Below, piece after piece: positions 1,590 through 59,450 of a stretch of 64,000 nt of DNA. A program made the position numbers and the translations under genes. The notes beneath the pieces were generated by a model. The model worked only from the letters and a program-made list of their open reading frames with translations. It ran no database searches and was not told the DNA's origin. Every line of letters begins with the position of its first letter. The stretch's first letter is position 1. The stretch lies in IMG/VR virus record IMGVR_UViG_3300010403_000705, positions 248,001-312,000 of that record. One strand, given 5' to 3'.

Positions 1590-1596
1590 ACCAACT

Positions 1597-6677: not shown

Positions 6678-6680
6678 TAA

Positions 6681-6709: not shown

Positions 6710-6717
6710 GAAAGTTC

Positions 6718-6752: not shown

Positions 6753-6804
6753 ACAGCGATTAACACTGATAAGCACCCATCAGTTAATAAGATCTTCTAC
6801 AACT

Positions 6805-6957: not shown

Positions 6958-6994
6958 GCTTTCCCATCCTACAGCATAAGGACAGATATCTATC

Positions 6995-7447
6995 ATGAAA
7001 GTCTATATTCTCGCGGGCGCCAGTGGCAGCGGTAAGAGTCATCTAGCTTCGAAGATATGGGCTAGCCATCCAAAGGTGCTGGTATGTAGCGCCGACGACT
7101 ACCTCTATGATAGCCATGGCACTTATGTGTGGGGCGCGGATAAGCTCGCCGCTGCACACAACGAATGTCTGAAGAAGTTCATTGCTGCTGTTCAAGAAGA
7201 AGTGCCTGTGGTGGTGGTGGATAATACCAATACCACCATAGCAGAGATCGCGCCTTACTACAGCATTGCAGCCGCCTACGGCGCTGAGGTTGAGCTTGTC
7301 ATCCTCTTCTGCAATCCAGAAAAAGCCGTCAACCGTAACAAGCATAATACGCCGGCACCGGTAGTAACTGCCCAGATAAAGCGCCTCGGATGTCAAGAGC
7401 TTCCTTCGTTCTGGAAGTGTTCTATTCAAGTGATGTGCACAGATTGA
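6995..7447 (+). CDS. P-loop nucleotide/polynucleotide kinase (AAA_33-like)
   Basis: GASGSGKS Walker A, CSADDY, VVVDNTN, RNKH lid. Confidence 0.85.
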   Translation: MKVYILAGASGSGKSHLASKIWASHPKVLVCSADDYLYDSHGTYVWGADKLAAAHNECLKKFIAAVQEEVPVVVVDNTNTTIAEIAPYYSIAAAYGAEVELVILFCNPEKAVNRNKHNTPAPVVTAQIKRLGCQELPSFWKCSIQVMCTD

Positions 7448-7454
7448 ACCACTG

Positions 7455-7484
7455 AGGCGAGGGGAGCATCCCCTCGCCTTTTTT
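7455..7484 (+). terminator. intrinsic terminator
   Basis: AGGCGAGGGGA-gca-TCCCCTCGCCT plus T tract. Confidence 0.75.
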
Positions 7485-7490
7485 GCTGAA

Positions 7491-7525
7491 TGGCGCAGTG
7501 ATTGCTAGTTGCAAAGTAGATGCCA
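7491..7525. promoter_or_regulatory. 35-bp dyad sigma54-like element
   Basis: TGGCGC-agtga-TTGCT-agt-TGCA-N7-TGCCA. Confidence 0.75.
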
Positions 7526-7595
7526 TCAACCATCCAGGTAATAAACTAATAAACCCATCGATTAATAAGAGATCCAATATCTGAGAGGTGCAACG

Positions 7596-9063: not shown

Positions 9064-9132
9064 GGCGTGGTAGAAAACCATAACCCATCCGCAAACTTCA
9101 GACATTATGTAGTTGGTGTGAGGTCAATCAAG

Positions 9133-11301
9133 ATGAAGAATCAGCCGCTGCCGATCGATGCCTTCTTGCCTGTTATTCTCGAAAGCGTTTCTTCTAATCC
9201 AGTCACGATCATTGTTGCCGAAACTGGCGCTGGGAAAAGCACGCGGGTTCCGCGTGCCTTGCTGGAAGCTGGCAAAAAAGTAGTGGTCACCCAACCGCGT
9301 CGTCTGGCTGCCGAATTGGTGGCTGAAAGAGTGGCGGCAGAGCACGGGTCTCCCATCGGTTCTTCTGTGGGATACAGGTTGGGCGGCGGGGTGCGAGTTG
9401 ATAACTCCAAGACTCGATGTTTGTTCATCACAGAGGGTCTGGCTCTGGTGCGTGAGCTGATGTCTTCTCAGGACTCCCATCACTCCTATGATGTGCTGGT
9501 GCTCGACGAAGTGCACGAATGGCACGAAGACATGGAGATTCTGGTTGCCTGGTGCCGGCGCGCTCTGGCAAGCAATGCGAAGTTTCGGTTGGTGCTGATG
9601 AGTGCCACCCTGGAAGCGCACAAGCTTTCTGAATACTTCGACGGAGCACCCATCATCAATGTTCCTGGTCGTATTTTTCCCGTGACGGTACAGGAACCCG
9701 AGGCGATGATTGAGGGCGATCAGAACCTGTGGAATCCCATCGTGCGCGACGTGACGCGATTGGTACAGCAAGGACGCAATGTCTTGGTCTTCGTTCCCGG
9801 CAAGCCCGAGATCTCTCAAGTCTGTGAAATGCTCAAGTTTACTGGGGCGAACGTTTTCCCTCTGCACGGCGAATTGGATAAAACAGAACGGCAGAAGTGT
9901 TTTGCCAGCTACTCCCATCCCAAGGTGATCGTCTCGACCAACGTATCACAGACTAGCATCACCATCGATGATATTGATGCAGTGGTGGATTCCGGTCTGG
10001 AGCGACGGGTGGAAGTGGTCAATGGTGTAGAGGGTCTGCGGCTGCGGTTGATCTCCAAAGCAGATTCTGCCCAGCGCCGCGGGCGCGCCGGTCGTTGTCG
10101 GGCAGGTATCTATATCGATCACAGCGATAACGCTTTTCGCACCATGCCCGGCGTGGGTTTTCGAGAAGAGTTTCCCATCCCCGAGATCTCTCGCGTCTTG
10201 CTTGACCGTGCGGTTCTTCGTCTGGCAATGGCGGATCTGGATCTGGAAGCTCTGGATCTGTTTCATGGTGTTTCTACATCTGAGGTGCATCTTGCCAAGG
10301 AAGTGCTTCGTGCGCTGGGTTGCCTGGGTGAGGGAATCCAGGTCACAGAGATTGGGCGACGCGTCTATCAGCTTCCCATCGGCGTTCGCTCTGCGCGGAT
10401 GCTGATAGAGGCTGAGAAGCGAGGATGCCTGAGTGAGGTGATGACCATTGCCGCCATCATCGAAAGCGGCGGAATCGTTGACAATAAAAACATCAACGAA
10501 GCAACTGGCATTCCCATCTGGCGCAATTTGGGCAGTGATAGCACCAGCGATCATCTGACCATGCTGAGAATCTTTCAGCATGCCACGGCAGGAAAGACCC
10601 CGTGGCGACAGCTTGGTTTGCACGGCAAAGGAATGTCGCAAGCCATAGAGACGCGCAAGGCATTGGAGTCCGCCAGCAAGAGAATCCTTGCCAGCGATTC
10701 CCATCGCAAAGGTACAACGGAAGATATCATTAAGAGCGTTTTGAGCGGCTTGGTTGATCAATTCCGAGCACGAACCACCAATCGTTGGGGAGAGTACACC
10801 TACGGCACTGACTGCCGGAAGCTCGGACAGACCTCCAGCGTTGTTGCCAGCGCCCATCAGTTTGTGGTAGGCATGCCTTTTGATATCTCTACCAAGAAGG
10901 GTGGGATCTTGGGTCTGCTGCAATTCGCTTCTGGAGTGAAGGTAGAGTGGGTGTTGGAGCTTGCTCCACATCTCTTCAAGGTACAGCGCGAAGCGCCGAA
11001 GTACGATCCGAATCTGGATCAGGTTGCTCGCACTACTACTGTTAAGTTCAGGGATCGCGTGGTGGCTAGCTTTGCCGATCCTTGCAATGAAGGAGATACT
11101 CTGGCGCAATATCTCTCGGAAGTTGTCAGTTTCAGCGATGCCTATGGCTATGGTTTTTATAGTTTGCCCGAGGCGTACCGCCGTGCTCTTCGAACTTTGC
11201 AGGGTCGTCCACGTCAGGTAGTACACACCCATCTCCGAAGTGTTTTGAGTGGGGTAGGTCGCCTGGCGAATGTAACGCCTTCTAGTTTGATGATGCAATG
11301 A
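9133..11301 (+). CDS. DEAH-box (HrpA/HrpB-like) RNA helicase
   Basis: LPI start, AETGAGKST, TQPRRLAA, DEVH, MSAT, PLHG, STNVSQTSITIDD, QRRGRAGR, HA2-like region. Confidence 0.92.
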   Translation: MKNQPLPIDAFLPVILESVSSNPVTIIVAETGAGKSTRVPRALLEAGKKVVVTQPRRLAAELVAERVAAEHGSPIGSSVGYRLGGGVRVDNSKTRCLFITEGLALVRELMSSQDSHHSYDVLVLDEVHEWHEDMEILVAWCRRALASNAKFRLVLMSATLEAHKLSEYFDGAPIINVPGRIFPVTVQEPEAMIEGDQNLWNPIVRDVTRLVQQGRNVLVFVPGKPEISQVCEMLKFTGANVFPLHGELDKTERQKCFASYSHPKVIVSTNVSQTSITIDDIDAVVDSGLERRVEVVNGVEGLRLRLISKADSAQRRGRAGRCRAGIYIDHSDNAFRTMPGVGFREEFPIPEISRVLLDRAVLRLAMADLDLEALDLFHGVSTSEVHLAKEVLRALGCLGEGIQVTEIGRRVYQLPIGVRSARMLIEAEKRGCLSEVMTIAAIIESGGIVDNKNINEATGIPIWRNLGSDSTSDHLTMLRIFQHATAGKTPWRQLGLHGKGMSQAIETRKALESASKRILASDSHRKGTTEDIIKSVLSGLVDQFRARTTNRWGEYTYGTDCRKLGQTSSVVASAHQFVVGMPFDISTKKGGILGLLQFASGVKVEWVLELAPHLFKVQREAPKYDPNLDQVARTTTVKFRDRVVASFADPCNEGDTLAQYLSEVVSFSDAYGYGFYSLPEAYRRALRTLQGRPRQVVHTHLRSVLSGVGRLANVTPSSLMMQ

Positions 11302-11320
11302 GCAAAAAGGAAAGAGTGAT

Positions 11321-12097
11321 ATGACGCATAAGATAACTCAGATTCTCATTGATTCCAAGGGCATCCTTTCCCCTGACAATTGGAGACAAGGCTCTTACTT
11401 CAAAGCTGAATCCGATTCTCTTTGCATGTGCGCTCACGGCGCTGTGCAAGTCTTTGCAAACGAGCGAGTCTTTAGCATTGTCGCGCCGTTTCTGAAACAG
11501 TCTTCTACCCATCACTCATCGCCGTCGACAGTGGAACGAGCGGTGTTGATGGCAGAGGCGGCATCCGCAGCGGATAGTCCTGGAAAGGCGGCGTCGATGG
11601 CATGTGGCACCGCAAAGACGCCGATTGATGCGGCATCGTTGGCAGCGACGGCGGCATCACGGGTAGAGGCGTCACTGGCGGCGCGACGTGGGGCGGCGTC
11701 GGCGGTAGGAGCGGTGGACAGCGCCGTCGCTGCGGCGGCTTCCGTGGCGGTTACAGAAGCGTTGGCTTCAGCGGCGGGTTATGAGGCGGATGATGTTGGC
11801 GCCGCTGATGTGGCGTTTGCAGGAATTAAAGCATCGCACATGGGAGCGACGGCAGCATCAGAGGGTGCGCAGCATGCTGAAGATGCAGCAGTTACACCTA
11901 CGAACGCCAGCACTGACGCCTTTACAATGGCGTGGAATACCCGTTCTTCGTGGGTGAAAGGTAATCTAGAGGCTCACTATATCCTTGGAATGGTTGGTCT
12001 GACCACATCTTTTAATGATTCTGCCAAGAGTCTGCAAGAGGTGCTGGTCAAGTTTGACGAAGCCATTGCTTTGAGCAAGGTTCTTCTGCCTGAGTAA
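11321..12097 (+). CDS. hypothetical protein, paralog family A copy 2, with Ala-rich insert
   Basis: Conserved termini as in 6204 and 13066; GC-rich low-complexity centre. Confidence 0.8.
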   Translation: MTHKITQILIDSKGILSPDNWRQGSYFKAESDSLCMCAHGAVQVFANERVFSIVAPFLKQSSTHHSSPSTVERAVLMAEAASAADSPGKAASMACGTAKTPIDAASLAATAASRVEASLAARRGAASAVGAVDSAVAAAASVAVTEALASAAGYEADDVGAADVAFAGIKASHMGATAASEGAQHAEDAAVTPTNASTDAFTMAWNTRSSWVKGNLEAHYILGMVGLTTSFNDSAKSLQEVLVKFDEAIALSKVLLPE

Positions 12098-12824
12098 AGG
12101 ATTGTTGCCTATAAGCTCGTTACCCATCAGGGTCGCGAGCTTGTGGCATTGATCGGATAGCTGAGGCTTCCGGGATTCGATAGATTAGTAAGGGAGATCG
12201 TAGGTGGTGGTGTCCTACTGTTGCAATCATCAGCAAAACGTTGAAGGTGGCAATATAGGGAAGAATACATATCCTGACCGTTTGAATTACTCTATCGGAG
12301 TCGCTGTGGGTGAGGGCGTCTTAAATACTTACCCATCATGTGGGGACCCAATGTTAGGTTGGATCTGATGGATGCGTTGGTTGGGGCTGCCCATCAATTC
12401 TATCAAAAGGTTGGCTTAGAAGCAGCCATCCTCTAAGGAGTGCCGCCGTAGAAAGGAGCTGCCCGCCGAAAGGCTAACCCATCACTACCGCTATAAAGAG
12501 GTGATGGAGTACGGGGAGCAACGGTTAAAAAATACCTCCACAAATCAATAGATGAATCTAAAAGTAGTTTATTGAGGAATAGTGGTTGCGGATTCTGTGT
12601 AGCTTTGGCGTAACAGCACATTGATAGAGTTTTCTCTTAGGTTTTGGTATGTGTACCTTTTTAATCACTGCTAGGTATTATGCAACCTATATAAAAGCAT
12701 AACCCTGTTTGCTAAATTGCCTGTCTGACGCATTACGGGGTATAACTGACTGTGCCGACAACTACCCATCGTTAGAGTCCACCTTTGTCAATGAAGCGTG
12801 GTTAAGGGTAGAGCATTGACGCAA

Positions 12825-12912
12825 GGGCGAATGGCGAAACTGGTAGACGCAGTGGTTTCAAAAACCGCCGAGGTAAAATCTCGTGGGGGTTCGATTCCCC
12901 CTTTGCCCACCA
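12825..12912 (+). tRNA. tRNA-Leu(CAA)
   Basis: GGGCGAA/TTTGCCC acceptor, GTGGT-TTCAAAA-ACCGC anticodon arm, long V-arm, TTCGATT T-loop, encoded CCA. Confidence 0.9.
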
Positions 12913-12937
12913 TGGGATTACTTTGTAATTCCCATCT

Positions 12938-13040
12938 GTCGAGCAGTGGCGGAAACGGATAGACGCTAAGGCAGTATGGCTGAGCTTAGTGATGATAAAC
13001 TATCACTAAGCATGCTGGTTCAAGTCCAGCCCTCGACACC
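12938..13040 (+). ncRNA. aberrant tRNA-like RNA (Leu-type D/T arms, no canonical anticodon arm, 10-bp V-arm)
   Basis: GTCGAG/CTCGAC acceptor, TGGCGGAA..GGATAGACGC, GCTGG-TTCAAGT-CCAGC, GCTTAGTGAT/ATCACTAAGC stem. Confidence 0.6.
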
Positions 13041-13065
13041 GATAGATTCCAATCATGGGAAATAA

Positions 13066-13527
13066 ATGAAAATTTCAGAAAAACTGATTGAAGCAAAATC
13101 ATATTTAACTGAGGAGACATGGCTACAAGGTCGACTTTTTCTCATTGAATTTGACAGTGGTAATATTCGTTTATGTGCTCATGCCTCTTGCGCTGTTGCA
13201 AGTAATGAAGCGATAAAAGCGCACTATGATAAAGCATGTGCGATAGTGGCTGCAAAGCAATATGCCTATGCTGACATCAGCAAAGCTACCGAACTAGGTG
13301 AGCTAACTTTGCTGATTGTTGCGTCTGATAAAGGAAACCAGTTAGCCAAAGATGGTGTTATGGTGGCTTGGAAAAACCGCCCATCATGGCTTAATGAAAA
13401 TAATCAGGTAAGTTACGTAGCAGGCATGGCGGGACTAACCATCGATTACAATGACACACATAGTTTACCAGAAGTTCTAGCCAAGTTTGATGAAGCTATT
13501 GCTGTAGCGCAATCTCTGGGCATCTAG
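13066..13527 (+). CDS. hypothetical protein, paralog family A copy 3
   Basis: ETWLQG, LCAHA, Y.AGMAGLT..YND..L.EVL.KFDEAI. Confidence 0.8.
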   Translation: MKISEKLIEAKSYLTEETWLQGRLFLIEFDSGNIRLCAHASCAVASNEAIKAHYDKACAIVAAKQYAYADISKATELGELTLLIVASDKGNQLAKDGVMVAWKNRPSWLNENNQVSYVAGMAGLTIDYNDTHSLPEVLAKFDEAIAVAQSLGI

Positions 13528-13550
13528 CCTTTTCTCAAAGGAAAAATATT

Positions 13551-13841
13551 ATGTCATGGATCAGGTCATTTCGTTCCCATCGAGAAGCTTGTGACATGAG
13601 GGATGTGCTCACGAAGCATGGTTTTGGAAAACGAGAAGATTTCGATGTTGTGACATCCAAGACTGCTTCAAGACTTTTTGATCTCAGTTATAATCACACC
13701 GCTTTTATGGTGCGCCCATGCAACAAGGAAACACAAGATCTCAATAGCAAGTACCTTTTGCTAGCAGTGCAAGCCAGTAACTTCTTGCATGGCTGGATTG
13801 CCTGCACCAACACCAAGAAGCCGCGCCCGAAGGTATCGTAA
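13551..13841 (+). CDS. hypothetical protein
   Basis: AAGGA RBS; terminator hairpin at 13846-13878 follows. Confidence 0.7.
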   Translation: MSWIRSFRSHREACDMRDVLTKHGFGKREDFDVVTSKTASRLFDLSYNHTAFMVRPCNKETQDLNSKYLLLAVQASNFLHGWIACTNTKKPRPKVS

Positions 13842-13892
13842 CTGCAAGGTTGGAGGAGGGGTTCCCTCCTCCAACCTTTGCTATATGGCTTA

Positions 13893-13927
13893 TGGTACAA
13901 CTTTTGCATTATGCACAATGAATGCCA
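13893..13927. promoter_or_regulatory. 35-bp dyad sigma54-like element
   Basis: TGGTAC-aactt-TTGCA-tta-TGCA-N7-TGCCA after hairpin 13846-13878. Confidence 0.8.
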
Positions 13928-14002
13928 ACATAAAAGTTTATAGGGTTTGCACTTCCCATCAGCTTTTGTTTGGTGATATTGATCGAGGAGTGCCAGAGAA
14001 TT

Positions 14003-14323
14003 ATGTGTGAGTTTCAAGTTGCTCTAACGTTATCCCAGATTGACTCCCCAAACGATGATCGTCAGATCATCGCTGCATTGGTCAAAGCCGGGCGTTTCGT
14101 CATAGTAGCTGAATTTCCACGATACTGTCATCTGACCGATGCTCTTATTGGAAGCGGAAAGATGATGGTCTCCGATCATGCAACTCGCGAAGAAGCGCTA
14201 GCAGCAATGCCTGCTGACGAGGAAGAGTTGTATCATTATGTACTTCCCAAACCTCAGGCGAATAACGTCAAGGTGGTAAACGAGGAAAAACAATCATCCG
14301 TGGAAGATGAGATTCCTTTCTAA
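14003..14323 (+). CDS. hypothetical protein with acidic C-terminal EDEIPF tail
   Basis: GAGGAG upstream; SSB-like C-terminal tip. Confidence 0.7.
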   Translation: MCEFQVALTLSQIDSPNDDRQIIAALVKAGRFVIVAEFPRYCHLTDALIGSGKMMVSDHATREEALAAMPADEEELYHYVLPKPQANNVKVVNEEKQSSVEDEIPF

Positions 14324-14364
14324 AGACCCATCAAGATGAACATACGCAAAAGAAAGACCTGAAT

Positions 14365-14610
14365 ATGAATGTAGGTTTGTCCTACCGCGGCGCCGTCATC
14401 CTGGATATGCTTAAAGCGAAAAACGGCAAGGTGCTTTCCCATCGTGCCATTGGACGGCGGCTTTGGAAAACCGATGCTCCTGCATCGTGGACTACCATGA
14501 TTGCAATTGAGATTGGCAAGCTGCGACGGATTGATTCCAATCTGCGTCGTCAGATTGTCAATGTACATGGCAAGGGTTACATGTTTGGATGCACTGTGCT
14601 CCACAAGTAA
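14365..14610 (+). CDS. stand-alone OmpR/PhoB-type winged-helix DNA-binding protein
   Basis: IL.ML....GKVLS...I...LW...I.KLRR...I.NVHGKGY pattern of the Trans_reg_C domain. Confidence 0.75.
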   Translation: MNVGLSYRGAVILDMLKAKNGKVLSHRAIGRRLWKTDAPASWTTMIAIEIGKLRRIDSNLRRQIVNVHGKGYMFGCTVLHK

Positions 14611-14675
14611 CCCATCAATCACAGATACATCACATAGACAGCAGTAACCAACATCAAGAAAAGGGAGACCTGAAT

Positions 14676-15041
14676 ATGAAGACCTACAGCAATCGTGACG
14701 GCAAGGTGACTGAGACCCGTGAGAGCGCCATGCGAAGGATCAGCACGGGCGACACGACCGCAAACGATCTTTCCCATCCGAATCAGCATGTCCGTCGAGC
14801 GGCGTGGCTGGCGAGCGACGCTCAGTTGCCGGAAGAGCCTGTCGCGCTGAAGCATCTGTTCGCTTCGCTGTGCCCTGGGGCTTTCAACAGGGTTTGCGCT
14901 CTCAAGAACGAAGGCGTTTCGCATGAGCCTCAGGAGGGAACCGATATCCCCATCAGTCTGATCTACTACAACGCGGCGGGAAGTTCCAAGCTCGCGGCGG
15001 CGTTCGTGGAGAAGCTTCCCATCTTCTTCGATCAGATCTAA
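14676..15041 (+). CDS. hypothetical protein
   Basis: GGGAG RBS, GC-biased codons. Confidence 0.7.
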   Translation: MKTYSNRDGKVTETRESAMRRISTGDTTANDLSHPNQHVRRAAWLASDAQLPEEPVALKHLFASLCPGAFNRVCALKNEGVSHEPQEGTDIPISLIYYNAAGSSKLAAAFVEKLPIFFDQI

Positions 15042-15247
15042 AAATATGACGATGTGAGGCGTGGGAACTGAAAGATAGTAGTCAGGCACAATGACAGGTC
15101 ATAAGGAAGAATTAAAATTCTTCCTTATGACGCTTAGTGCCATGCGCTTATTCTGACCCTGTAATGACTACCATTGGAGCGCAGCGCCTTACATCACGAT
15201 TTAATCCCATCTTTTGAGATGGCTTGAGCAAGGGTTAAAGGTGACCT

Positions 15248-15493
15248 ATGATTCTCGTGTCAAACATTAGACAAGATCTTAATAACAGTGGGCTTAACAG
15301 CCAATTGTCAGATGCTGATCTTCTGGGTGTATACGAAAAACTGTTTGCCAAAGGATATGATTATCACAATCATATTCTTTATATCCTTGCAGAGCTTCGT
15401 GGTACATCTCAACGCGAATTGCAAGAGACAATAGACTGGTGTGGTCCTGGTAGCTCCGAGGATATGGCATACTTTGACAAGGTATGTCCGTAA
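15248..15493 (+). CDS. hypothetical protein
   Basis: AGGTG RBS, ORF. Confidence 0.6.
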   Translation: MILVSNIRQDLNNSGLNSQLSDADLLGVYEKLFAKGYDYHNHILYILAELRGTSQRELQETIDWCGPGSSEDMAYFDKVCP

Positions 15494-15866
15494 ACCTCAT
15501 CAAGCAATAAGCACCAAGAGATTGTCATGCCACATCAAAAAAGGATCCCAGGGATCCCATCGGATATATAAACCTATACGATACTTGCGAAATGCAGAAA
15601 GAAAAGGTTTAACATTATGTTCTTCACGTGATGTGAGCGCTAAACTCTGTCAATGGGCTTGGATTTAGCTTTATAGGTAGCTCTCAGTAAAAAGTGAGCT
15701 TAGGATACAAGCTACGTCTGGTAAGATTGACAGAGACTCTAAGAGGGCGGCGCTAACATAAAAAGCCCTGCTAGTTTGTATCACCCATCAAATTAGGAGA
15801 ATACCTAGGAGAATATCAGCCATCAATACGATGGCGCTAATCTCGGATTACCCTCTCACTTGGCGG

Positions 15867-15949
15867 CTGTAATTTGGGGGTTCGAATCCCTCTGTGCTTT
15901 AGGCATAGCTCAATCGGTAAGAGCAATCGCTTTTAAGCGATCATTACAG
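15867..15949 (+). ncRNA. circularly permuted tRNA-like module within a long ORF-free structured region
   Basis: Order T-arm, closed acceptor hairpin, D-arm, anticodon arm, enclosed by CTGTAAT/ATTACAG. Confidence 0.7.
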
Positions 15950-16669
15950 TGTACCTTGTGAGTAAGGCGAAACTATTAGCTCTCCTATCAAAGCTCCCAT
16001 CCAAACACAGGATAAATCAATCCAAGTGCAATTCCTGTTTCCTGTTTTTTTGGAACCGTAAAAACGGTATGATTTACTCCTGACATAATTGTACGCCCGA
16101 TTCACTAACTAGGGCTATAGATACCATAGGGATAACTTAACGCTCTCCCATCAGATCGTAGCGTTACACGGGATGCAAGAGGCTTGCTGGGCGGACAAGG
16201 ATCCATCCGCAATATTGAAGATGCTGAGCATGCCATATATCACCAGGGTTTCCGGCTCAATGGGTTTGGAAACACTTTGATAGATGCAGATCATGACTGA
16301 ATACTCATTCAATAAAACCACCTAACACTTGCTATAACACCCATCATATAAGGCGGGTTAGATAAAGCTGAGGAAACCGTTGGGAAGTTGAGTTTTGATC
16401 GAGACCTTATGATGATTGCGCCTCGCGCATGAGGGTTGGTAGGATACCCATCTATCTACCAAGGCAATGTAGATCAAGACAACCGATATACCACGTCTTG
16501 AAGAACGTGGATCGCCAACGGAGCATTAGGGCTACGCTCAGCGCCCGCCTAATGTTTAACTTGTGGTTAGTGTATAGTTAACAAGAGACCCTTGTATTGT
16601 ACCCATCAATCTTGTTGATTATGTACTGTTCACAAGCTCATTGAAAAGTTATCATATCGAGGTGATATC

Positions 16670-32454: not shown

Positions 32455-33714
32455 ATGTGGTTCCAAAATCTTTCTGATACCGAAGAAGCTGGGTGGTTTC
32501 CTGAAACACATGCACACCCAGATAAGTTTGGAGATCTGTGGGCAATGACGCCTACATATAAACTTCAGAAATCATCTGGGCAAAAAGACATTGTTCTATT
32601 GTCTACTGGTGGTTTTACTCCTCTTCATGATGGTCATATTTGCATGATGGAAGCCGCAAAGATTCACATGGAATCTCAAGGCTTTCGTGTGCGTGGAGGA
32701 TATATTTCTCCAGGTCATGATGATTATGTAGTTCAACATAAAGGCGTACGCATCTACGCGCCTGAACGTTTAGTGTATGCTAATAACAAGTTAAAGGATC
32801 ATCCTTGGTTAATGGTTGATCCTTGGGAAGCTATTGGTTGTTCTTGTAGTGTTAATTTTACGACAGTCATTGATCATTTGGAAAAATTTCTTAACTGTCG
32901 TGTTTGTTTTGTTGTAGGATCGGATAACGCCAGATTTTCTTTGGCTTTCCAAGAGCATGGACTTTTGTGTATTGTACCTCGTTCGGCAGAAGTTTTACCT
33001 AATCCTAAATACCGAACTCGATCGTACATGCATAAGTCGCAAAATGTTTTTATTGCTAACAATGAGCCAATTATAGGTAGCAGTACAGACACGCGCAGAG
33101 AGATGAGTTTTGGTAACTTGCAAGAAAAAAAGAAATTAATTCTGCGTGTAGATGCCGATTCAGAGTCATATCTGAGTCGGTTACTTGCTATTCTAGTAGA
33201 TTATTATGCTGAAATAAGTATTGTTAGAGTAGCTGAGCAAGAACTACCACATGGTATAGCTAATCTAGTTAGTTTAGATCAGATGATGGTATCATCTTTC
33301 GGTAACTTGGGTATCTCTAGAAACTATGCCGAAGGTGGCTACATCAAACTAGGATATATTAATCGTCCTGGTACTTCTGCTTTAGGGCAGCAAATAAAGT
33401 TTTTTACCAATCAATCCGTTTCTCTTTTTGATGATGATGTGGTGACTGGTAGCACGATGCGTAAAGTAAGCGCTTTACTTAAAGAAGTAAATTGTAAAGT
33501 GGTCTCGTATCATGCTTTGTCTTTTACTGATGAAGGTATGTATGAGATTTTAGATAGCAGAGATTTCCTTCCGATTTCCGAAGGTGGTTTAGTGGTACGT
33601 GGGATGAGAGTGCCATACATTTATCCATACGTGTGTCCACACGCACGTGCGTCCATATTATCTAATCAGGCTGTTGAATTTTCTGATCGTATTTATAAAG
33701 AATTCTGGAGCTAA
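32455..33714 (+). CDS. NMN/NaMN adenylyltransferase (NadD/NMNAT-like) fused to a C-terminal PRTase-like domain
   Basis: GGFTPLHDGH (HxGH), SPGHDDYV, VDPWEA, VGSDNA, SST..R; C-terminal LFDDDVVTGSTM PRPP-binding loop. Confidence 0.8.
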   Translation: MWFQNLSDTEEAGWFPETHAHPDKFGDLWAMTPTYKLQKSSGQKDIVLLSTGGFTPLHDGHICMMEAAKIHMESQGFRVRGGYISPGHDDYVVQHKGVRIYAPERLVYANNKLKDHPWLMVDPWEAIGCSCSVNFTTVIDHLEKFLNCRVCFVVGSDNARFSLAFQEHGLLCIVPRSAEVLPNPKYRTRSYMHKSQNVFIANNEPIIGSSTDTRREMSFGNLQEKKKLILRVDADSESYLSRLLAILVDYYAEISIVRVAEQELPHGIANLVSLDQMMVSSFGNLGISRNYAEGGYIKLGYINRPGTSALGQQIKFFTNQSVSLFDDDVVTGSTMRKVSALLKEVNCKVVSYHALSFTDEGMYEILDSRDFLPISEGGLVVRGMRVPYIYPYVCPHARASILSNQAVEFSDRIYKEFWS

Positions 33715-33726
33715 TAGAATGTAGAT

Positions 33727-34821
33727 ATGCTCAAGGAAAAATATCTAATTTTATACTATTTTAACATGATTATTGGTTCAGATAACGATTTGTTTGATTC
33801 AAATGATTCATTGAGTAAATCTCTTGTACTTTCATGGATTAAATATTTGGAAGACAAGAGTTATGATATATTATCTAAGCATTACCCCAAAGATGAAGCG
33901 CAGGTTGAGGTAACTAACGGTTCGCAAAACTTTATAGGAAAAATTGTTCGTTATCCCAAATCTTTAGGAGAATCAACAGGATGTCTATTTGTAATCGATA
34001 GAGAGTATGGCGGCGGTTCTTGGGTGCCGTACCTATGTATTACTGAAATAAATGGATAATTAATATGATTATTTCTAAACTCTTAAAAGATAAGATGCAT
34101 AATAGAGGTGTACCTGGTTGGTTTATTCATGAAATATTTGATCGTAATTATCATATTAACGATGGAGAATTGTTGTCTTGGACATTGATTCCATTGCTAG
34201 ATCAAATGCCCATCTTATCATCTCATAAAGATAGATATGGAGTTAAGGCGGCTGAGCAAGCAAGAGTATTAACAGATGCGGCGATGCAAATATCTTTGCA
34301 GTGTTTTCAAATCACACCTGGTTTTAAAAAGCTTAGTGATGAATTTAAGAATTATCTTAATGAATCTTCAACTTGGCATCTTCAATCTTTTTTTAGTGGA
34401 ATTAGATTGAAGTATAATCACACTAAGTTGAAAAGTGTCATTGAAGCTAGCTTTTGGTCTAGTCACGATTATGGTGTTAAGATAAATGATTGGGGATTTA
34501 ACCCAATGAATCAAGCTGCACATGCAGCGCATGTTTTTACACAATCCGCTACTATTCTTGATAGTGAATTTGTTTGGTCAGAAGCTGCGAAACTCTTACA
34601 GAAGATTAGTAAAAACAATGAAGATTCCTGAACATAGGCGTTGTATTCATGATCGTAATAAAAACCAAATTGGATATGTTTGGTATAGTGGTCCAGTAAT
34701 TTCTATTGAAGGAAAATTGTACCATTGTTCAGATTATGATGATGGTTATTTTGAAGTAGTTCCCATCATTGTAGAAGGTGGGATCCATTATTGTCTTGGC
34801 GATTCTCGAATGAGTGATTAA
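33727..34821 (+). other. three hypothetical CDS (33727-34059, 34065-34631, 34618-34821)
   Basis: Packed ORFs. Confidence 0.6.
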
Positions 34822-34831
34822 AAAAAATATA

Positions 34832-35695
34832 ATGAGTAAATCAAAAGGTAAGCAACAGGTAAATATTACTATTCTTTACGGTCTGCCTGGTAGTGGAAAA
34901 TCCTTTTATAGTCAACGAAACAAAGAGACTAGAGTTGACTTTGATGCTATCATTAAGTCACATGGACCAAATAAATTTGCTGTTTTAAAAGAGCTTAATA
35001 GGCAAACAGAAATAAAATTATCAAGAAATTATTACTACACTAGAAACCATGCCGTAACTATTGATGGTTTGGTTACTACCAATCAACAGCTTCGAGATTT
35101 GATCGATTCCTTTACCAGTTACTTCCAACAATATCAGATCATTTTTAGGTTAGTATATTGGAATGAAGACCGAGAAGCTTGTCTTCATAACGATAAAAAC
35201 CGTCGTACAATTTCTGCGGCAGCGGCAATTAAATCTATGCCGTATGAAAAACCGCATTTTGATTCTTTTCCTGAACTATCCCAGAAAAGAATTCAACCTA
35301 TGAAGGTAGTGAAAAAGCATAATGCTATTTCATGGATCTCCCATCTGTTAAGAGAGTTGGATTATGATCCTATTCAGATCGAAACTATTACTGACACTAT
35401 GCAATTGGAATCTAAAAGCTGGTGTTTGGGCGGAGAATGTTGCACTTGGGATGATCAATCTTCTGTAGTAGAAGCACAGGCTCCGCGGCAGTTCGAGGAG
35501 CTTGATAGGCTGCTTGTATATATTAATCCTGAGATTACAGCTATAGATTTTAGACAGATAAAGGATATCTGTTGTAGTCTATTTCATTTTTCCGAATCAG
35601 ATTATTATGGCGGCAGCACCGATAATGCCAGACATGTATGTGATCTAAAACAGTTATATGAATGTTTACTAAATCTTCAATTCATAAATGAATGA
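34832..35695 (+). CDS. P-loop kinase (PNK-like) with extra C-terminal domain; paralog of 39995
   Basis: ILYGLPGSGKS, IDGL.TTN.QLR, EDREACL.ND..RR. Confidence 0.82.
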   Translation: MSKSKGKQQVNITILYGLPGSGKSFYSQRNKETRVDFDAIIKSHGPNKFAVLKELNRQTEIKLSRNYYYTRNHAVTIDGLVTTNQQLRDLIDSFTSYFQQYQIIFRLVYWNEDREACLHNDKNRRTISAAAAIKSMPYEKPHFDSFPELSQKRIQPMKVVKKHNAISWISHLLRELDYDPIQIETITDTMQLESKSWCLGGECCTWDDQSSVVEAQAPRQFEELDRLLVYINPEITAIDFRQIKDICCSLFHFSESDYYGGSTDNARHVCDLKQLYECLLNLQFINE

Positions 35696-36612
35696 GATAC
35701 TATAATCATATGCTTTTTAATCCTAGTGATTATCTGGTACAGAAAATTTCTTTGCTAGAAGACTATTTCATTCAATTCGGAATTGATGCAGTAGTTTTTG
35801 GAATGTCTGGTGGTGTAGATTCAGCAGTAGTTGCTGGAATTCTCAAGCGTTGTCAATCACTCAAACGAGTGATTGCAGTGGCTGCACCCATCTCTTCTAA
35901 GGGAGCTACTAATCAAGATGTGGCGGCAAATCGAGCGGTCAAACAATGTGAGGCTTTTGACCTTGAAGTATGGAAGCTTGATCTTACCCCCGCTCAGTTT
36001 TGTTATGAAGGCATCATGAGATGTTCCCCATCTAATGCAGAGGGTGAGAGAAGAGTATGGGCAGACGGACAGATCCTTTCAATTGCTCGAACTCCTTTGT
36101 TTTATGGTGTGGCTGCGCATCTGCAAGCTGAAGGATATCGGGCTGTGGTTTCTGGCACCACGAATCGTTCCGAGGGATCATATATTGGATTCTACGGTAA
36201 AGGTTCAGACGGTATGAATGACATCCAACCTATCTCAGATATGTGGAAGTCTCAGGTCTTTGCACTAGCCAATCATCTGGGAGTGATTCCTGAAATTATC
36301 AATGAGAAACCGCGTGGAGATGTTTGGGATTCTCGTTGTGATGAAGAGATGATTGGCGCCACTTATCCTCAGATAGAAGCTTATCTAGAAGCTAAATGTC
36401 TTAGTTTTTCAATGAACCCATTTTCGCCCGCAGCCACGTCTTACCAAAAAATGGTTGGTGCTGAAGCGATAGAAAAACTTCATAGCATCAATCGTCATAA
36501 ATATCTAGTCGGGTCCCCTGCTATTCATTTTGATATTCTTGATCGCCATATACCGGGTGGATGGTCTGAAATGAATAGTTATACCCATGTCCTTGGAAGA
36601 CGTTATGTCTAA
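35692..36612 (+). CDS. nadE: NH3-dependent NAD+ synthetase
   Basis: GMSGGVDSAVV, GTTNRSE, GFYGKGSDG..DIQPI.D..KSQV..LA..LG, DEEMIG.TY. Confidence 0.9.
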   Translation: MRYYNHMLFNPSDYLVQKISLLEDYFIQFGIDAVVFGMSGGVDSAVVAGILKRCQSLKRVIAVAAPISSKGATNQDVAANRAVKQCEAFDLEVWKLDLTPAQFCYEGIMRCSPSNAEGERRVWADGQILSIARTPLFYGVAAHLQAEGYRAVVSGTTNRSEGSYIGFYGKGSDGMNDIQPISDMWKSQVFALANHLGVIPEIINEKPRGDVWDSRCDEEMIGATYPQIEAYLEAKCLSFSMNPFSPAATSYQKMVGAEAIEKLHSINRHKYLVGSPAIHFDILDRHIPGGWSEMNSYTHVLGRRYV

Positions 36613-36625
36613 AGGTAGAAGGTAA

Positions 36626-36916
36626 ATGAAGCTAAATATAGCTGACTTACGTTATTATTCGATTGCTAATAGAACGCAAATCCAAGCACAGGAAAGATGT
36701 GCTTGTTACTATTGTATTAAAATCTATCAATCAAATCTGATTGTAGAGTGGCATTTGGAAAAACGTGGTCAATATAAAGGGGAAGAAACAGCTATTTGTC
36801 CTTTCTGTGGAATTGATTCAGTGATTCAATTCGAGCATTCTTTCCATGAAGAAATTGATATTTCTTTTCTGAAGTCCGCCAGAGATTATTGGTTTCATAA
36901 CAATAGCTCTAAATGA
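36626..36916 (+). CDS. small Cys-rich (zinc-binding) conserved hypothetical protein
   Basis: CACYYC ... TAICPFCGIDSVI. Confidence 0.75.
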   Translation: MKLNIADLRYYSIANRTQIQAQERCACYYCIKIYQSNLIVEWHLEKRGQYKGEETAICPFCGIDSVIQFEHSFHEEIDISFLKSARDYWFHNNSSK

Positions 36917-36955
36917 TTTTGGATTCAAAATACAATAACTAAAAGTAATAAAATT

Positions 36956-37771
36956 ATGCTTAATCTTGGATTCAAAGGTTCTGTGCCTGGCGCTTGGCGT
37001 GTCCCAGAAAACTTCAAACTAACAGCACATTGTTGCAGTGGATTGTCAAAGTCAATCCTTCCCAATCTTGCCTTATACATTCCAGACGCCTTATCAAAGA
37101 AGGATTGTGATCTTCTTATAAAACTATTTCGCAAACAAAAAACTGCTCCTGTAGCAGTATCAGGATACCAAACTGCTGATCCAAATGAAATTGGCAGTGT
37201 GCGTGCGACAGGTTGGGGACCAGAGCTGAGTGCACAATTGTGGGAGAAACTGTGTGCAGCATGCAGCGCATTTGGTGTTGCACTTGGCAGTGAGTATGGT
37301 CCTGTTTCAGTAAATCAATTTACACCCACTGACTGGTACGCTATCCCAGGCAAACGCAAAGAGCATACTAGATGGATAGAATCCGGAATTTCTCCAGTGC
37401 TTAGGTTTATGGAATACAGACATGGGGGACGTCATAATACCCATTATGATATGGGATTTGATTATGAAGCTCATAATCCAAACGATCATCGACGCACTCT
37501 TATGTCTGTGGTATGGTATTTGAATGAAGAACCTCATTCAGGAGGTTGTACTAGATTTATTGAAGACGGTCAATCCCATCTACCGATTTGGAATAGAAAG
37601 CTAGATGATTGGGAGCGTTCTGCTAGTGAAGATGAAGTATTAGCTACGCAACAGCCGCATCGTGGGGGTGCTTTGATTTTTTGGCACCGAATGGCTCATG
37701 ATGTGCAAGAATTTACTGGTAATTCTCGCATCATTATCCGTGGTGATATTGAATTCACTGCGCTGAACTAA
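36956..37771 (+). CDS. 2OG-Fe(II) oxygenase (prolyl-hydroxylase-like)
   Basis: RFMEY..GG.H..HYD, YLN....GG.T.F, H..AHDV, R...RGD. Confidence 0.85.
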   Translation: MLNLGFKGSVPGAWRVPENFKLTAHCCSGLSKSILPNLALYIPDALSKKDCDLLIKLFRKQKTAPVAVSGYQTADPNEIGSVRATGWGPELSAQLWEKLCAACSAFGVALGSEYGPVSVNQFTPTDWYAIPGKRKEHTRWIESGISPVLRFMEYRHGGRHNTHYDMGFDYEAHNPNDHRRTLMSVVWYLNEEPHSGGCTRFIEDGQSHLPIWNRKLDDWERSASEDEVLATQQPHRGGALIFWHRMAHDVQEFTGNSRIIIRGDIEFTALN

Positions 37772-39887: not shown

Positions 39888-39970
39888 GCCGAAGTGGTGG
39901 AATGGCAGACACAGCGGACTCAAAATCCGCCGCCCATAAGGGCATGAGGGTTCAAGTCCCTCCTTCGGTA
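39888..39970 (+). tRNA. tRNA-Leu(CAA), second copy
   Basis: GCCGAAG/CTTCGGT, GCGGA-CTCAAAA-TCCGC, long V-arm, TTCAAGT T-loop. Confidence 0.92.
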
Positions 39971-39994
39971 CTAATCAATTTTAGGAGATGGTAT

Positions 39995-40810
39995 ATGTCT
40001 AAAGGTAAAAAATCAAAATCCATTACTATTCTATACGGTTTGCCAGGAAGTGGTAAATCTACATACGCCAAGGATACTGGTATTTCTGTAGTAGATGCTG
40101 ATGAAATTGGACATAAATTCTTTGCATCTACAAATGAGAGATTTGCGTACTTAGCTAGCAAAGTAGAGTATGTATTGACCTCTAAATATACAGACTCTGT
40201 TATTATTGATGGATTATTTACCACCAATGAACAGTTGAGAAGGATTATAGATTCTCTTTCTTTTCTTTCGGAAAAATGGCAAATCACATTTAAATTGGTT
40301 TACTGGGTCGAGGATCGAGCAGCGTGTCTTGTTAATGATCAAGGAAGGAGAGCAAAAAGTTCCGCTATTTCAATTAATAATCTTCCTTTTGAAAAGCCTG
40401 ATCCTTCAGTAGTTCCTGAGTTTTTCGTTAGCAAAAATAGAATTAAAGAAATGCAAGTAGTGCAAAGATCTCCTGCTCAAATTTGGGCGAAATCACTTGA
40501 TCTTGATTCAAATAAAATGGAATTAAGATCTGAAAGTTGGTCTTTAGGAGGAACATCCGGCAATTGTTGGGACAATGAGTTGAGAAGAATCAGTCCAAGT
40601 TCGCCACTAGAATTTGTGGAGTTCGACGAGCTATTGCAAAAGGTTTGTCCTAACCTTTCTTATTTGCAATATAAAGAGATCAATAGATCTTGTTGCAGAC
40701 TTGATGAACACGAATCAACTGATTATTATAGTGGTTCGGAAACAATTGTCCAACATGTGTGCGATATAAATGCATTATATAATAAACTTTCTAACTTAGG
40801 GATTATTTAA
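39995..40810 (+). CDS. P-loop kinase (PNK-like), paralog of 34832
   Basis: AGGAG RBS; ILYGLPGSGKST; same C-terminal domain (W.LGG..G.CWD, DYY.G). Confidence 0.82.
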   Translation: MSKGKKSKSITILYGLPGSGKSTYAKDTGISVVDADEIGHKFFASTNERFAYLASKVEYVLTSKYTDSVIIDGLFTTNEQLRRIIDSLSFLSEKWQITFKLVYWVEDRAACLVNDQGRRAKSSAISINNLPFEKPDPSVVPEFFVSKNRIKEMQVVQRSPAQIWAKSLDLDSNKMELRSESWSLGGTSGNCWDNELRRISPSSPLEFVEFDELLQKVCPNLSYLQYKEINRSCCRLDEHESTDYYSGSETIVQHVCDINALYNKLSNLGII

Positions 40811-58226: not shown

Positions 58227-59450
58227 ATGTCAGATTGGAAGCCACAAGTTGTAAAAATCTGCAAAGTAGAAAAGCATTTTAATGCTGATACCTTGGATAT
58301 TGTTTTCACTTCAATTGGTGACTATCCAATTGTTACCAAGCTGGGTGAGTACCACGTAGGTGATTTAGCAGTATATATTCCAATTGACACCATCGTTCCT
58401 GATGTTAATGAATTCTTTTTCCTTTGTCCCAAACATGAAGGAAGTGTCATTCCTAAATATGAATTAGGTTGTGTTCCAGAGCGCTATCGACGAATTAAAG
58501 CAAAGAAGATTCGTGGACAATATTCACAAGGCATGTTGATTGCGTGCCCTCTGTACATTAATGGTCATCTTGTGTCTGCATCTGAGATGATGCAGAGTGG
58601 CATGCCTGAGGAAACAATTCTATCTCTTGATGTAGTTAAGATTTTGGGTCTTACTAAGTGGGAAGAAGAGGAAGAAGAAGCTTCCGATCTTTATGCAAAG
58701 AAAGCTAAAGAACACACGCAAACAGAAAAAAGACCTGAAGGTTGGTCTATTCCTTACTATGATATTGATGGTTTGAGAAAGTGTTCAGATTGTTTGGCTC
58801 CTGATGAAGAGATTGTTTTAACTGAAAAAATTCATGGGGCGAATGGTAGTTTTTGCCATGATGGATCTAGGTTGTGGGTAAAATCTCGCAATTTGTATAA
58901 GAAAGGGGAAATTGAGGTTCCAGTATATGAAGAGTTAGTTAGTGATGTTATTGAAGAAACTGGAGAGCAAATTAAGCAGCATGTGCGTGTAGGAACCAAG
59001 ATGATTCCCTCTACTGATCAGTGGTGGGAAGTTGCACGACGCTTGGGTTTAGAAGACAAGTTATCTCAATATCCAGGTCTGGTTTTCTTTGGCGAGGTAG
59101 CTGGACAGGTTAAAGGTTTCCGATACGATGCTAAAATTGTAGATGAAAAACTACAACCATGTCTATATCTTTTTGATGTATGGGATCTCAAATCCATGAG
59201 GTATTTGGATTATGATGATCGCATTTCATTGATTCAGTCGCTTGATTTAACGCCAGCCCCACAACTTTATAGAGGTCCTTGGCTTGGTAAAGAAAAAATG
59301 TATCCTTATGCTGAAGGAAAAACAACTACTAGCGGTAAGCATATTCGAGAAGGTTTTGTCTTGAATACAATTAAAGAAAGATTTGAGCCGCGATTAAATG
59401 GTAGGATGCAAGCTAAGTTGGTCGGAGAATCCTACAATCTTCTAAAGTAA
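58227..59450 (+). CDS. RNA ligase, Rnl2/DRB0094-like
   Basis: N-terminal H.NAD.L...GD..VY.P.D, RG..SQG; TEKIHGAN motif I, FGEV.G, LFDV, REGFV, K.V.E.Y. Confidence 0.88.
   Translation: MSDWKPQVVKICKVEKHFNADTLDIVFTSIGDYPIVTKLGEYHVGDLAVYIPIDTIVPDVNEFFFLCPKHEGSVIPKYELGCVPERYRRIKAKKIRGQYSQGMLIACPLYINGHLVSASEMMQSGMPEETILSLDVVKILGLTKWEEEEEEASDLYAKKAKEHTQTEKRPEGWSIPYYDIDGLRKCSDCLAPDEEIVLTEKIHGANGSFCHDGSRLWVKSRNLYKKGEIEVPVYEELVSDVIEETGEQIKQHVRVGTKMIPSTDQWWEVARRLGLEDKLSQYPGLVFFGEVAGQVKGFRYDAKIVDEKLQPCLYLFDVWDLKSMRYLDYDDRISLIQSLDLTPAPQLYRGPWLGKEKMYPYAEGKTTTSGKHIREGFVLNTIKERFEPRLNGRMQAKLVGESYNLLK

Follow-up and report, generated by a model that had tools for sequence, protein, structure and literature searches.

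Introduction

NAD+ depletion is a central weapon of bacterial immunity, and three routes by which phages rebuild the cofactor are known: NARP1, in which Adps (Prs-like) is paired with Namat (a NAMPT-family transferase); NARP2, in which Nampt is paired with Nmnat, as in NadV/NatV of Vibrio phage KVP40; and NARP3, in which the PnuC transporter is paired with NadR, an NMNAT fused to a ribosylnicotinamide kinase (PMC13464706). The Preiss-Handler pathway proceeds through PncB (a type II NaPRTase), NadD and NadE, and pncB-nadD-nadE clusters have already been reported bioinformatically in metagenomic jumbo phages (PMC11662467). In the Francisella NMN synthetase route NadE* acts before NadM. The gene set described here, from a 433-kb soil phage, corresponds to none of the three NARP routes: an NMN adenylyltransferase (NMNAT) domain fused to a type I phosphoribosyltransferase (PRTase)-like domain, an NAD synthetase family protein and an Fe(II)/2-oxoglutarate (2OG) oxygenase, for which we found no published description. 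A first-pass annotation of the 64,000-nucleotide stretch analysed (the window) had proposed that these genes, together with a P-loop kinase, form a possible NadE-dependent NAD+ reconstitution route distinct from NARP1 and NARP2, with the fused PRTase supplying the mononucleotide.

Results and Discussion

Domain composition of the phage locus

The observation on which that proposal rested was confirmed, since all the ORFs described were found on the + strand with the domains and motifs assigned to them (Table 1). A 96-aa ORF between nadE and the oxygenase gene, and three small ORFs between the fusion and the kinase-like gene, had not been mentioned.

Table 1. Features of the locus of the proposed phage NAD module (positions in the window).
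Position	Strand	Length	Predicted product and features	Place in the module
32455..33714	+	419 aa	Fusion protein: eukaryote-type NMN/NaMN adenylyltransferase domain (residues ~40-222; GGFTPLHDGH with H58-D-G60-H61; SSTDTR 209-214) and type I PRTase-like domain (residues ~224-419; PRPP loop DDDVVTGST 326-334, within LFDDDVVTGST)	Core
33727..34059	+	110 aa	Unknown function	Lineage-specific insert, not part of the conserved module
34065..34631	+	188 aa	Unknown function	Lineage-specific
34522..34821	+	99 aa	Overlaps the 188-aa ORF; coding doubtful
34814..35695	+	293 aa from the GTG	P-loop kinase-like protein, GLPGSGKS; database copies start at the ATG six codons later; stop overlaps the nadE start as ATGA at 35692-35695	Accessory, only in this phage clade
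35692..36612	+	306 aa	Single-domain (NH3-type) NAD synthetase family PP-loop amidotransferase; SGGVDS 39-44; no glutaminase domain	Core
36626..36916	+	96 aa	Cys-rich (CxxC...CPFC) small protein	Not conserved with the module
36956..37771	+	271 aa	Fe(II)/2OG oxygenase, predicted prolyl-4-hydroxylase (P4H)-like fold; iron ligands H163, D165 and H244; R262 for 2OG	Core
39902-40810			Paralogue of the kinase-like protein, 40% identical

The N-terminal half of the fusion protein matched the nadD/NMNAT model TIGR00482 at 6.6e-10, but with 39 bits against a cut-off of 112, so that it is not a bacterial NadD equivalog. A family profile searched against solved structures hit the A. thaliana NMNAT (9rpk) at 4e-28 and human NMNAT1 (1kqn) at 6e-20, and the alignment includes the DPWE mononucleotide motif. 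The (T/H)xGH and SxTxxR motifs are invariant or nearly invariant in 43 homologues. On our reading of the profile alignment, the loop carrying the stacking Trp of eukaryotic NMNATs appears to be deleted. The AlphaFold model of the whole protein (pLDDT 91, pTM 0.90) gave Z 18.4 and 17.7 to solved NMN/NaMN adenylyltransferases by VIA and E 8e-9 by Foldseek, and the pTM suggests a rigid two-domain unit.

The C-terminal half showed weaker similarity. PF00156 was hit only at E 0.009 (15.7 bits against a cut-off of 26.3), and residues 224-419 of the model aligned to type I PRTases at only Z 6.2-6.8, although the DDDVVTGST loop is invariant among the homologues. The hood residues are unlike those of any assigned family. 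Type I PRTases normally use lactam or purine-type bases, whereas all known enzymes that make pyridinium mononucleotides are type II PRTases. It is conceivable that the pathway does not make a pyridine nucleotide but another carboxamide-bearing nucleotide or dinucleotide (for example from an orotate-, imidazole- or pyrrole-type acid) serving as a specialised metabolite, a signal or a modification precursor, and the cluster-like accessory genes described below would fit this. We consider this unlikely, since the NMNAT domain is closest to bona fide NMN/NaMN adenylyltransferases, NadE scores above the NAD synthase cut-offs, and the neighbouring genes are NAD-linked.

The nadE product matched PF02540 at 2.9e-31 (108.9 bits, cut-off 21) and TIGR00552 at 8.5e-30 (103.8 bits, cut-off 63.65), and its motifs, including S39-G-G-x-D43-S44, are invariant in 31 homologues. 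The best solved relative was 3fiu, the Francisella NadE, at 3e-24. The oxygenase matched PF13640 at 1.1e-8 (36.4 bits, cut-off 27), and H163, D165, H244 and R262, an intact HxD...H/Arg site, are invariant in 30 homologues. Its AlphaFold model (pLDDT 92) was closest to P4H-family folds at Z ~15, in a flat list led by protein prolyl hydroxylases.

The kinase-like protein gave only a weak AAA_33 hit (4.6e-5, below cut-off). Its homologues came only from phage or metagenome contigs, and distant ones lie beside Rnl2 RNA ligase. The 110-aa and 188-aa ORFs gave no hit in Pfam, PHROG, NCBIfam or PADLOC; the former is absent from related loci, and the only homologue of the latter is in the related phage L063 (45% identity). 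The 99-aa ORF, known from the ORF list only, gave no family hit in Pfam, PHROG or NCBIfam. The 96-aa protein matched phrog_30788 (function unknown) at 1e-12 and has no counterpart in the compared locus L062, where nadE abuts the oxygenase gene.

Conservation of the module in bacteria and phages

The fusion, NadE and the oxygenase are a conserved unit. Of 50 informative bacterial loci, nadE lies beside the fusion in 47, the oxygenase in 41 and both in 40, always in the order nadE-oxygenase-fusion, and these bacteria belong to at least eight phyla. This association is far beyond chance, because the same three genes are adjacent in dozens of unrelated genomes. In 18 loci NadE is fused to the oxygenase, and in 14 more all four domains form one protein of ~1100 aa with the oxygenase in-frame between NadE and NMNAT, as in the 1118-aa protein of Legionella shakespearei; NadE-NMNAT-PRT fusions were also found. 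Databases label the module only 'NAD(+) synthase'. The trio recurs in phages of 110-480 kb and lies within about 6 kb in 7 of 12 jumbo-phage loci. The module is thus mainly bacterial and not a phage invention, and the kinase-like gene, present only in the clade of the phage studied here, is not a core member.

All seven oxygenase-less loci with intact flanks carry a radical-SAM gene beside nadE, drawn from two unrelated radical-SAM families. These proteins most resemble, though only weakly, the nucleotide- or nucleobase-acting enzymes MoaA, viperin and queuine lyase. Variable tailoring genes (ATP-grasp, PLP decarboxylase, radical SAM, a second oxygenase) occur at the loci and resemble those of specialised-metabolite clusters. 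NAD-linked genes were also found nearby: NAMPT, with or without NUDIX, lies within 3 kb in four bacterial loci, NADAR lies nearby in one locus (L076), and an NAD-dependent DNA ligase lies within about 5 kb in three phage loci.

In the phage genome itself, an NAD-dependent ligase (LigA) is encoded elsewhere, and the only Prs-family gene, 64 kb from the module, encodes a canonical PRPP synthetase (1.7e-98 to solved Prs). No PF04095 match (NAPRTase/NAMPT family), no PncB or other type II PRTase and no PF04973 (PnuC) was found in the 433-kb genome. All five host genomes tested hold another NadE copy outside the module locus, and three of the five hold a NadD match above the family cut-off. The module is therefore redundant there for ordinary NAD+ synthesis.

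These results bear on the simplest reading, a plain NadE-dependent route from nicotinate (PRTase, then NadD-like, then NadE) in which the oxygenase and kinase are unrelated neighbours or only regulators. In its favour, NMNAT and NadE are typical members of their families, the phage lacks other NAD synthesis genes but has LigA and Prs, and jumbo phages are known to carry pncB-nadD-nadE clusters (PMC11662467). However, the oxygenase is fused to NadE in 32 of the bacterial loci, its catalytic residues are invariant and it is replaced by radical-SAM genes where absent, which is not how an unrelated neighbour behaves. This reading is considered unlikely.

A further possibility is that the oxygenase does not act on the nucleotide, but either releases ammonia for the glutaminase-less NadE by oxidative deamination of an amine or acts as an O2/2OG-sensing regulatory or protein-hydroxylating domain. 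The oxygenase sits directly on NadE in the fusions, its predicted fold is P4H-like, and both 2OG oxygenases (KanJ) and radical-SAM enzymes (DesII) can deaminate. Nevertheless, this would be a costly way to obtain ammonia, without precedent in the NadE family (only nitrilase-type partners are listed in PMC3376133), and replacement by two different radical-SAM families argues for chemistry on a shared small substrate. We regard it as very unlikely.

Proposed pathway

The interpretation given in the first-pass annotation was supported in part. Its domain calls, the distinction from the described phage routes and the line PRTase, NMNAT, NadE fit the data, the last also fitting the PRPP synthetase and ligase of the phage; but a plain NadD plus NadE route needs no oxidation and leaves out the oxygenase, a core member, while the kinase does not belong to the conserved unit.

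The explanation we prefer, with about even confidence, is that the window holds a phage copy of a conserved, so far uncharacterised four-activity module for pyridine-dinucleotide synthesis. In this view, the type I PRTase-like domain would join a carboxylated N-heterocycle, most likely nicotinate or an oxidised relative, to PRPP made by the phage's own synthetase. The tightly packed NMNAT domain would adenylylate the mononucleotide with ATP, and NadE would amidate the carboxylate with free ammonia, either after adenylylation (NaAD to NAD) or before it (NaMN to NMN, as in Francisella). The P4H-like oxygenase would perform one obligatory C-H oxidation, on the base or on a nucleotide intermediate, a role taken by a radical-SAM enzyme in oxygen-free lineages. 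In the phage, the module would supply NAD+ or a near-identical analogue to the NAD-dependent DNA ligase and keep the pool up when the host or its defences deplete NAD+. What the analysis establishes is the identity of the domains (the PRTase assignment being the weakest), their intact active-site motifs, the conserved synteny, the multi-domain fusions and the absence of NARP1-3 components; the catalytic activities, including adenylylation of NMN or NaMN and the NadE substrate, the order of steps, the base, the oxygenase substrate, the product and the benefit to the phage are inferred. Canonical NAD+ synthesis from nicotinate requires no oxidation, so the place of the oxygenase is not accounted for by that product. 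Canonical NAD+ remains the likeliest single product, though short of more probable than not, followed by a modified NAD analogue and, slightly behind, by some other compound.

The reading in which the product is a non-canonical NAD analogue is tentative. Here the oxygenase, or radical SAM in anaerobes, would oxidise the pyridine ring (for example to a pyridone, a natural N-H substrate for a type I PRTase) or the ribose, giving a dinucleotide that resists or inhibits NAD-cleaving enzymes while still serving some NAD users. The integral oxidative step, a PRTase-like domain of type I rather than type II, the redundancy with housekeeping NadD/NadE, the variable tailoring genes and the resemblances of the radical-SAM substitutes agree with it, and conserved Arg residues in the oxygenase suggest to us an anionic substrate. 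On the other hand, there is no direct evidence for any modified product, the NAMPT, NUDIX and LigA neighbours fit ordinary NAD+ equally well, and the oxygenase fold list is flat and led by protein hydroxylases. In an extended form, which we hold to be unlikely, NAD-cleaving immune effectors (TIR, SIR2, RES) would be unable to cleave the oxidised dinucleotide or would be blocked by it, while it still fed enzymes such as the phage ligase. This would be a small-molecule counter-defence and, in bacteria, a self-protection or antagonism tool.

If the module makes NAD+, it is a fourth, oxygen-linked route to be set beside NARP1-3, and it contains the first type I PRTase for a pyridine base; if it makes an analogue, it is a new class of cofactor or anti-defence metabolite. 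Either way, the single-polypeptide versions make the question directly testable with one recombinant protein.

Comparison with described systems

The Preiss-Handler pathway, including its clusters in phages over 200 kb, shares with the route proposed for this module a phosphoribosyltransferase step, adenylylation by a HIGH-family NMNAT/NadD and ATP-dependent amidation by NadE. Here, however, PncB is absent, and the type I PRTase-like domain fused to the NMNAT may stand in for it, which is an inference; the NMNAT is eukaryote-type and a 2OG oxygenase is an integral fourth member. NARP2 has the same phage-borne two-step logic of PRTase plus NMNAT using PRPP and ATP as that proposed here, but the phage has an Nmnat-type domain without Nampt, and the module includes the oxygenase and needs NadE, so that it would start from a carboxylate rather than nicotinamide. 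With NARP1 it shares a Prs-family gene and the presumed purpose of keeping NAD+ up, but the Prs is canonical and distant, and no Namat is encoded. In NARP3 and the other bifunctional NMNATs (NadR, NadM-Nudix) an NMNAT domain is fused to a second NAD-pathway activity, as is proposed here, but the partner in this module is type I PRTase-like, not a ribosylnicotinamide kinase or a Nudix; there is no PnuC, and the kinase is a separate AAA_33-like protein. As in the Francisella route, a single-domain NH3-type NadE is paired with an NMNAT that, by family, accepts NMN or NaMN, although the NMNAT is of the eukaryotic type, not NadM. Finally, the LarB/LarE nickel-pincer nucleotide pathway is a precedent for a PP-loop enzyme that tailors an NaAD-derived nucleotide into a specialised cofactor, but its components are not homologous beyond the PP-loop fold, LarE scoring only 0.0013.

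Genome and Window

The window (bases 248001-312000) is part of a single contig of 432,844 bp held as an IMG/VR virus record, with a CheckV completeness of 97%. The genome contains 39 tRNA genes, a tmRNA, a tRNA with a CUA anticodon which would read TAG, a terminase-like ORF and an NAD-dependent DNA ligase (LigA). A search of public sequencing runs found this DNA in only one of them, a soil DNA metagenome that is probably the source sample, and in no RNA run. The genome is therefore that of a huge soil phage. DNA and protein searches of the INPHARED phage collection gave no match.

The overall GC content is 0.33, but the stretch from 240 to 340 kb is richer, and the module itself is at 0.38. 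The composition shift is strong, with a GC content of 0.45-0.56 in the first part of the window, against 0.30 for most of the 433-kb genome. The record is labeled "provirus" in IMG/VR. Since the related locus L062 is also GC-rich (0.50) around its module, the shift looks like a lineage feature rather than a misassembly. In the GC-rich part, long ORFs of 450 aa or more run on both strands over the same DNA, and the antisense ORFs are probably shadows. The features located in this genome and in related loci are listed in the table below.

Features of the window, of the phage genome (contig G000:C1) and of related loci
Sequence	Position	Strand	Feature
Window	1-30000		Region of composition shift (with genome 240-340 kb)
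Window	1898-3358 and 9067-11301	+ (9067-11301)	Long ORFs on both strands over the same DNA; the 744-aa ORF at 9067-11301 is a DEAD/HA2 helicase
Window	32455-37771		Eight ORFs of the NAD module region
Window	39888-39971		tRNA-Leu(CAA)
Window	39902-40810		Kinase paralogue, 302 aa as listed
Window	58227-59450, 61174-62739, 62889-63998		RNA ligase (PF09414 plus the PHA02142 OB domain) near two adjacent phiEco32-like COOH-NH2 ligase genes
G000:C1	55645-55997 and 58637-58710		tmRNA and tRNA with a CUA anticodon (outside the window)
G000:C1	366745-367947		400-aa protein with a second, different HIGH-type nucleotidyltransferase domain at its C-terminus
L003 (phage locus)	12862-14793	-	643-aa protein, second HIGH-type nucleotidyltransferase fused to an RNA-ligase domain
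L063 (IMGVR_UViG_3300035661_000001, 452 kb)	8001-9037		First 161 residues of the fusion joined to the last ~24 residues of the oxygenase
L046 (bacterial locus)	1-16300		Larger cluster around nadE and the fusion
L058 (bacterial locus)	1-11600		Larger cluster around nadE and the fusion

Sequence and Predicted Structure of the Module Proteins

The eight ORFs of the module region are co-directional and are separated by gaps of 40 nt or less, or overlap. All of them are open under table 11, and no other genetic code was used. A scan for promoters and terminators was uninformative, with promoter-like sites at chance level. The first ORF (419 aa) has the two NMNAT signatures, HDGH at residues 58-61 and SSTDTR at 209-214, and matches TIGR00482 at 6.6e-10. 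A profile built from 43 homologues hit solved eukaryote-type NMNATs at 4e-28 (A. thaliana) and 6e-20 (human NMNAT1). The AlphaFold model of this protein is confident (pLDDT 91, pTM 0.90); residues 27-223 aligned to NMNATs at Z 18, and residues 224-419 aligned to type I phosphoribosyltransferases (PRTases) at Z 6.2-6.8. The PRPP loop DDDVVTGST of this second, PRTase-like domain is invariant in the family, although PF00156 stays below its cut-off.

The 293-aa ORF has a Walker A motif and only a weak AAA_33 hit, and its stop overlaps the nadE start as ATGA. The NadE assignment is unambiguous, with PF02540 at 2.9e-31, an SGGVDS motif and no glutaminase domain, and its best solved relative is the Francisella enzyme 3fiu. 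The last ORF (271 aa) is a PF13640 oxygenase with invariant H163, D165, H244 and R262 and a predicted P4H-like fold. Fold searches with the oxygenase model (PDB by Foldseek and VIA, ESM Atlas) gave a flat list of the P4H superfamily with no clue to the substrate; the nearest ESM Atlas structural cluster (TM 0.74 over residues 6-271) is a 651-member family, 97% eukaryotic and mostly from molluscs, with no known function. A PADLOC search gave nothing beyond a generic 2OG domain, so this is not a listed defence system. The arrangement described in the first-pass annotation is thus real, and its domain calls are correct.

Conservation of the Gene Set

To establish which genes belong together, a word search was used, which found 85 full-length homologues of the NMNAT-PRTase fusion. 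Fifty-six loci from species-representative bacterial genomes, 11 from IMG/VR and a few from other assemblies were then retrieved. In bacteria the order nadE, then oxygenase, then fusion is fixed. Of 50 loci with enough flank, 47 have nadE, 41 have the oxygenase and 40 have both. In 18 loci NadE and the oxygenase are one protein, and in 14 loci all four domains form one protein of 980-1590 aa, as exemplified by Legionella shakespearei (1118 aa, L022:6135-9491) and Paraliomyxa miuraensis. A search with the Legionella protein found dozens more such proteins which, where a source names them, appear as "NAD(+) synthase" or "NAD+ synthetase"; NadE-NMNAT-PRT fusions were also found. These fusions are strong evidence that the four activities serve one pathway, and the single-protein versions make the module easy to test.

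The kinase-like protein and the small ORFs behave differently, since they occur only in the window's own clade (loci L001 and L062), and they are treated here as accessory or unrelated. The reading of the 293-aa protein as an NAD kinase, an NR kinase or a core member of the module was rejected, because it is absent outside this clade, has a paralogue 4 kb away, and its distant relatives lie beside RNA ligases. The tRNA-Leu(CAA) gene overlaps the listed start of the paralogue, and similarity to the first kinase begins only at residue 33, so the true start is probably downstream of the tRNA. The window holds five tRNA genes (Leu x2, Arg, Ile(UAU) and Tyr), and these, together with the kinase paralogues, the RNA ligase and the two COOH-NH2 ligase genes, look like an RNA-repair and modification neighbourhood. 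In the close relative L063, the first 161 residues of the fusion are joined directly to the last ~24 residues of the oxygenase, followed by a homologue of the 188-aa small ORF of the window, which looks like a deletion that removed most of the module.

All the phage loci come from contigs of 75-482 kb, and three of them place an NAD-dependent DNA ligase within about 5 kb of the module. A quick maximum-likelihood tree placed the window's clade on a long branch, beside a mixed group of phage, Bacteroidota and Cellvibrio sequences. The phage label needs 2-4 changes on this tree, which points to repeated exchange.

Five host genomes all hold another NadE copy outside the module locus, and three of them hold a NadD match above the family cut-off; the module is therefore an extra. 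At least four separate NadE matches in open frames of 645-805 aa in the Polyangiales genome of locus L010 suggest several paralogous copies of the NadE-oxygenase gene in one myxobacterial genome. Four bacterial loci have NAMPT within 3 kb, of which one also has a NUDIX gene and two have a second oxygenase. Another locus has NADAR and an ATP-grasp gene, and a cyanophycin-synthetase-like ATP-grasp gene recurs in four loci. Two distant bacteria (L046 and L058) share a larger cluster, which includes a radical-SAM gene, an ATP-grasp gene, a ~300-aa unknown, a ~540-aa unknown and proteins of 770-930 aa, one with a vWA domain; L046 also has an 852-aa protein with a weak nucleoside 2-deoxyribosyltransferase-like hit. 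This cluster resembles a specialised-metabolite or conflict system.

The Oxidative Component

Eight loci lack the oxygenase. They come from Eubacteriales, Clostridia, Elusimicrobiaceae, Curtissbacteria, one Pseudomonadales MAG and one unclassified uncultured bacterium, and all seven with intact flanks have a radical-SAM gene next to nadE. Five of these carry a MoaA/viperin-like type of 290-322 aa, and four of the five also have a PLP-decarboxylase-like gene, while the other two carry an unrelated type of 382-393 aa. An example of a radical-SAM variant operon is L017:4897-9518. The exchange of an O2-dependent enzyme for radical-SAM enzymes is a familiar aerobic/anaerobic pairing, although that these lineages are anaerobes is inferred from their taxonomy. 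It implies a real C-H functionalisation step, and the oxygenase is regarded as integral to the module.

Proposed Chemistry

In the most parsimonious scheme, the PRTase would make a mononucleotide from a carboxylated base and PRPP, the NMNAT would add AMP, and NadE would turn the carboxylate into the amide using free ammonia. These steps follow from established knowledge of the three families. Adenylylation and amidation may occur in either order, because the NadE resembles the Francisella NMN synthetase and eukaryote-type NMNATs accept both NMN and NaMN. In agreement with the first step, the phage has a canonical PRPP synthetase, in addition to two Nudix genes and LigA. The NadE-dependent route proposed in the first-pass annotation is only partly supported, being plausible but incomplete, since the unit is a conserved module of four predicted activities, bacterial as well as phage-borne, with an unexplained oxidative step.

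It is at this oxidative step that the pathway departs from textbook NAD synthesis, and three options are considered. It may create the base used by the type I PRTase-like domain, since type I enzymes normally ribosylate an N-H of a lactam-type ring, which a hydroxypyridine or pyridone would offer. Alternatively, it may tailor a nucleotide intermediate or the product, giving an NAD analogue, or it may serve NadE indirectly, for example by supplying ammonia or by sensing. The many invariant arginines of the oxygenase and the nucleotide-type affinities of the radical-SAM substitutes favor a small anionic substrate, but this evidence is weak. Canonical NAD+ is tentatively taken as the likeliest of the products, although short of an even chance; an NAD analogue is possible but rather unlikely, and a product of another kind somewhat less likely still. 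For the phage, the benefit would most simply be a private supply of the dinucleotide for LigA and resilience to NAD+ depletion. The ORFs, their motifs and their domains, the PRTase-like one less firmly, and the conservation and fusion of the gene set were established by the analysis, whereas the enzymatic activities of the module, the sequence of reactions, the product and the benefit to the phage are inferred.

Comparison with Known Systems

Surveys of phage NAD systems mention only NadV, NadM and NadR (PMC9503650, PMC7824862), and a family-wide NadE study lists only nitrilase-type partners (PMC3376133). Full-text literature searches found no description of a NadE-oxygenase-NMNAT-PRTase module, which does not prove that none exists. 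Component tests showed that the module is not NARP1, NARP2 or NARP3 (PMC13464706; review PMC13728456), as the phage has no NAPRTase/NAMPT-family gene and no PnuC. A NARP1-like reading, with the Prs-like enzyme acting as Adps and feeding the type I PRTase, was rejected, because the phage Prs is a near-canonical PRPP synthetase, lies 64 kb away, and its neighbours have no NAMPT-like hit. The module would work most like a Preiss-Handler line, and pncB-nadD-nadE clusters have been reported in jumbo phages (PMC11662467). However, it lacks PncB, uses a fused type I PRTase-like domain and a eukaryote-type NMNAT, and adds an oxygenase.
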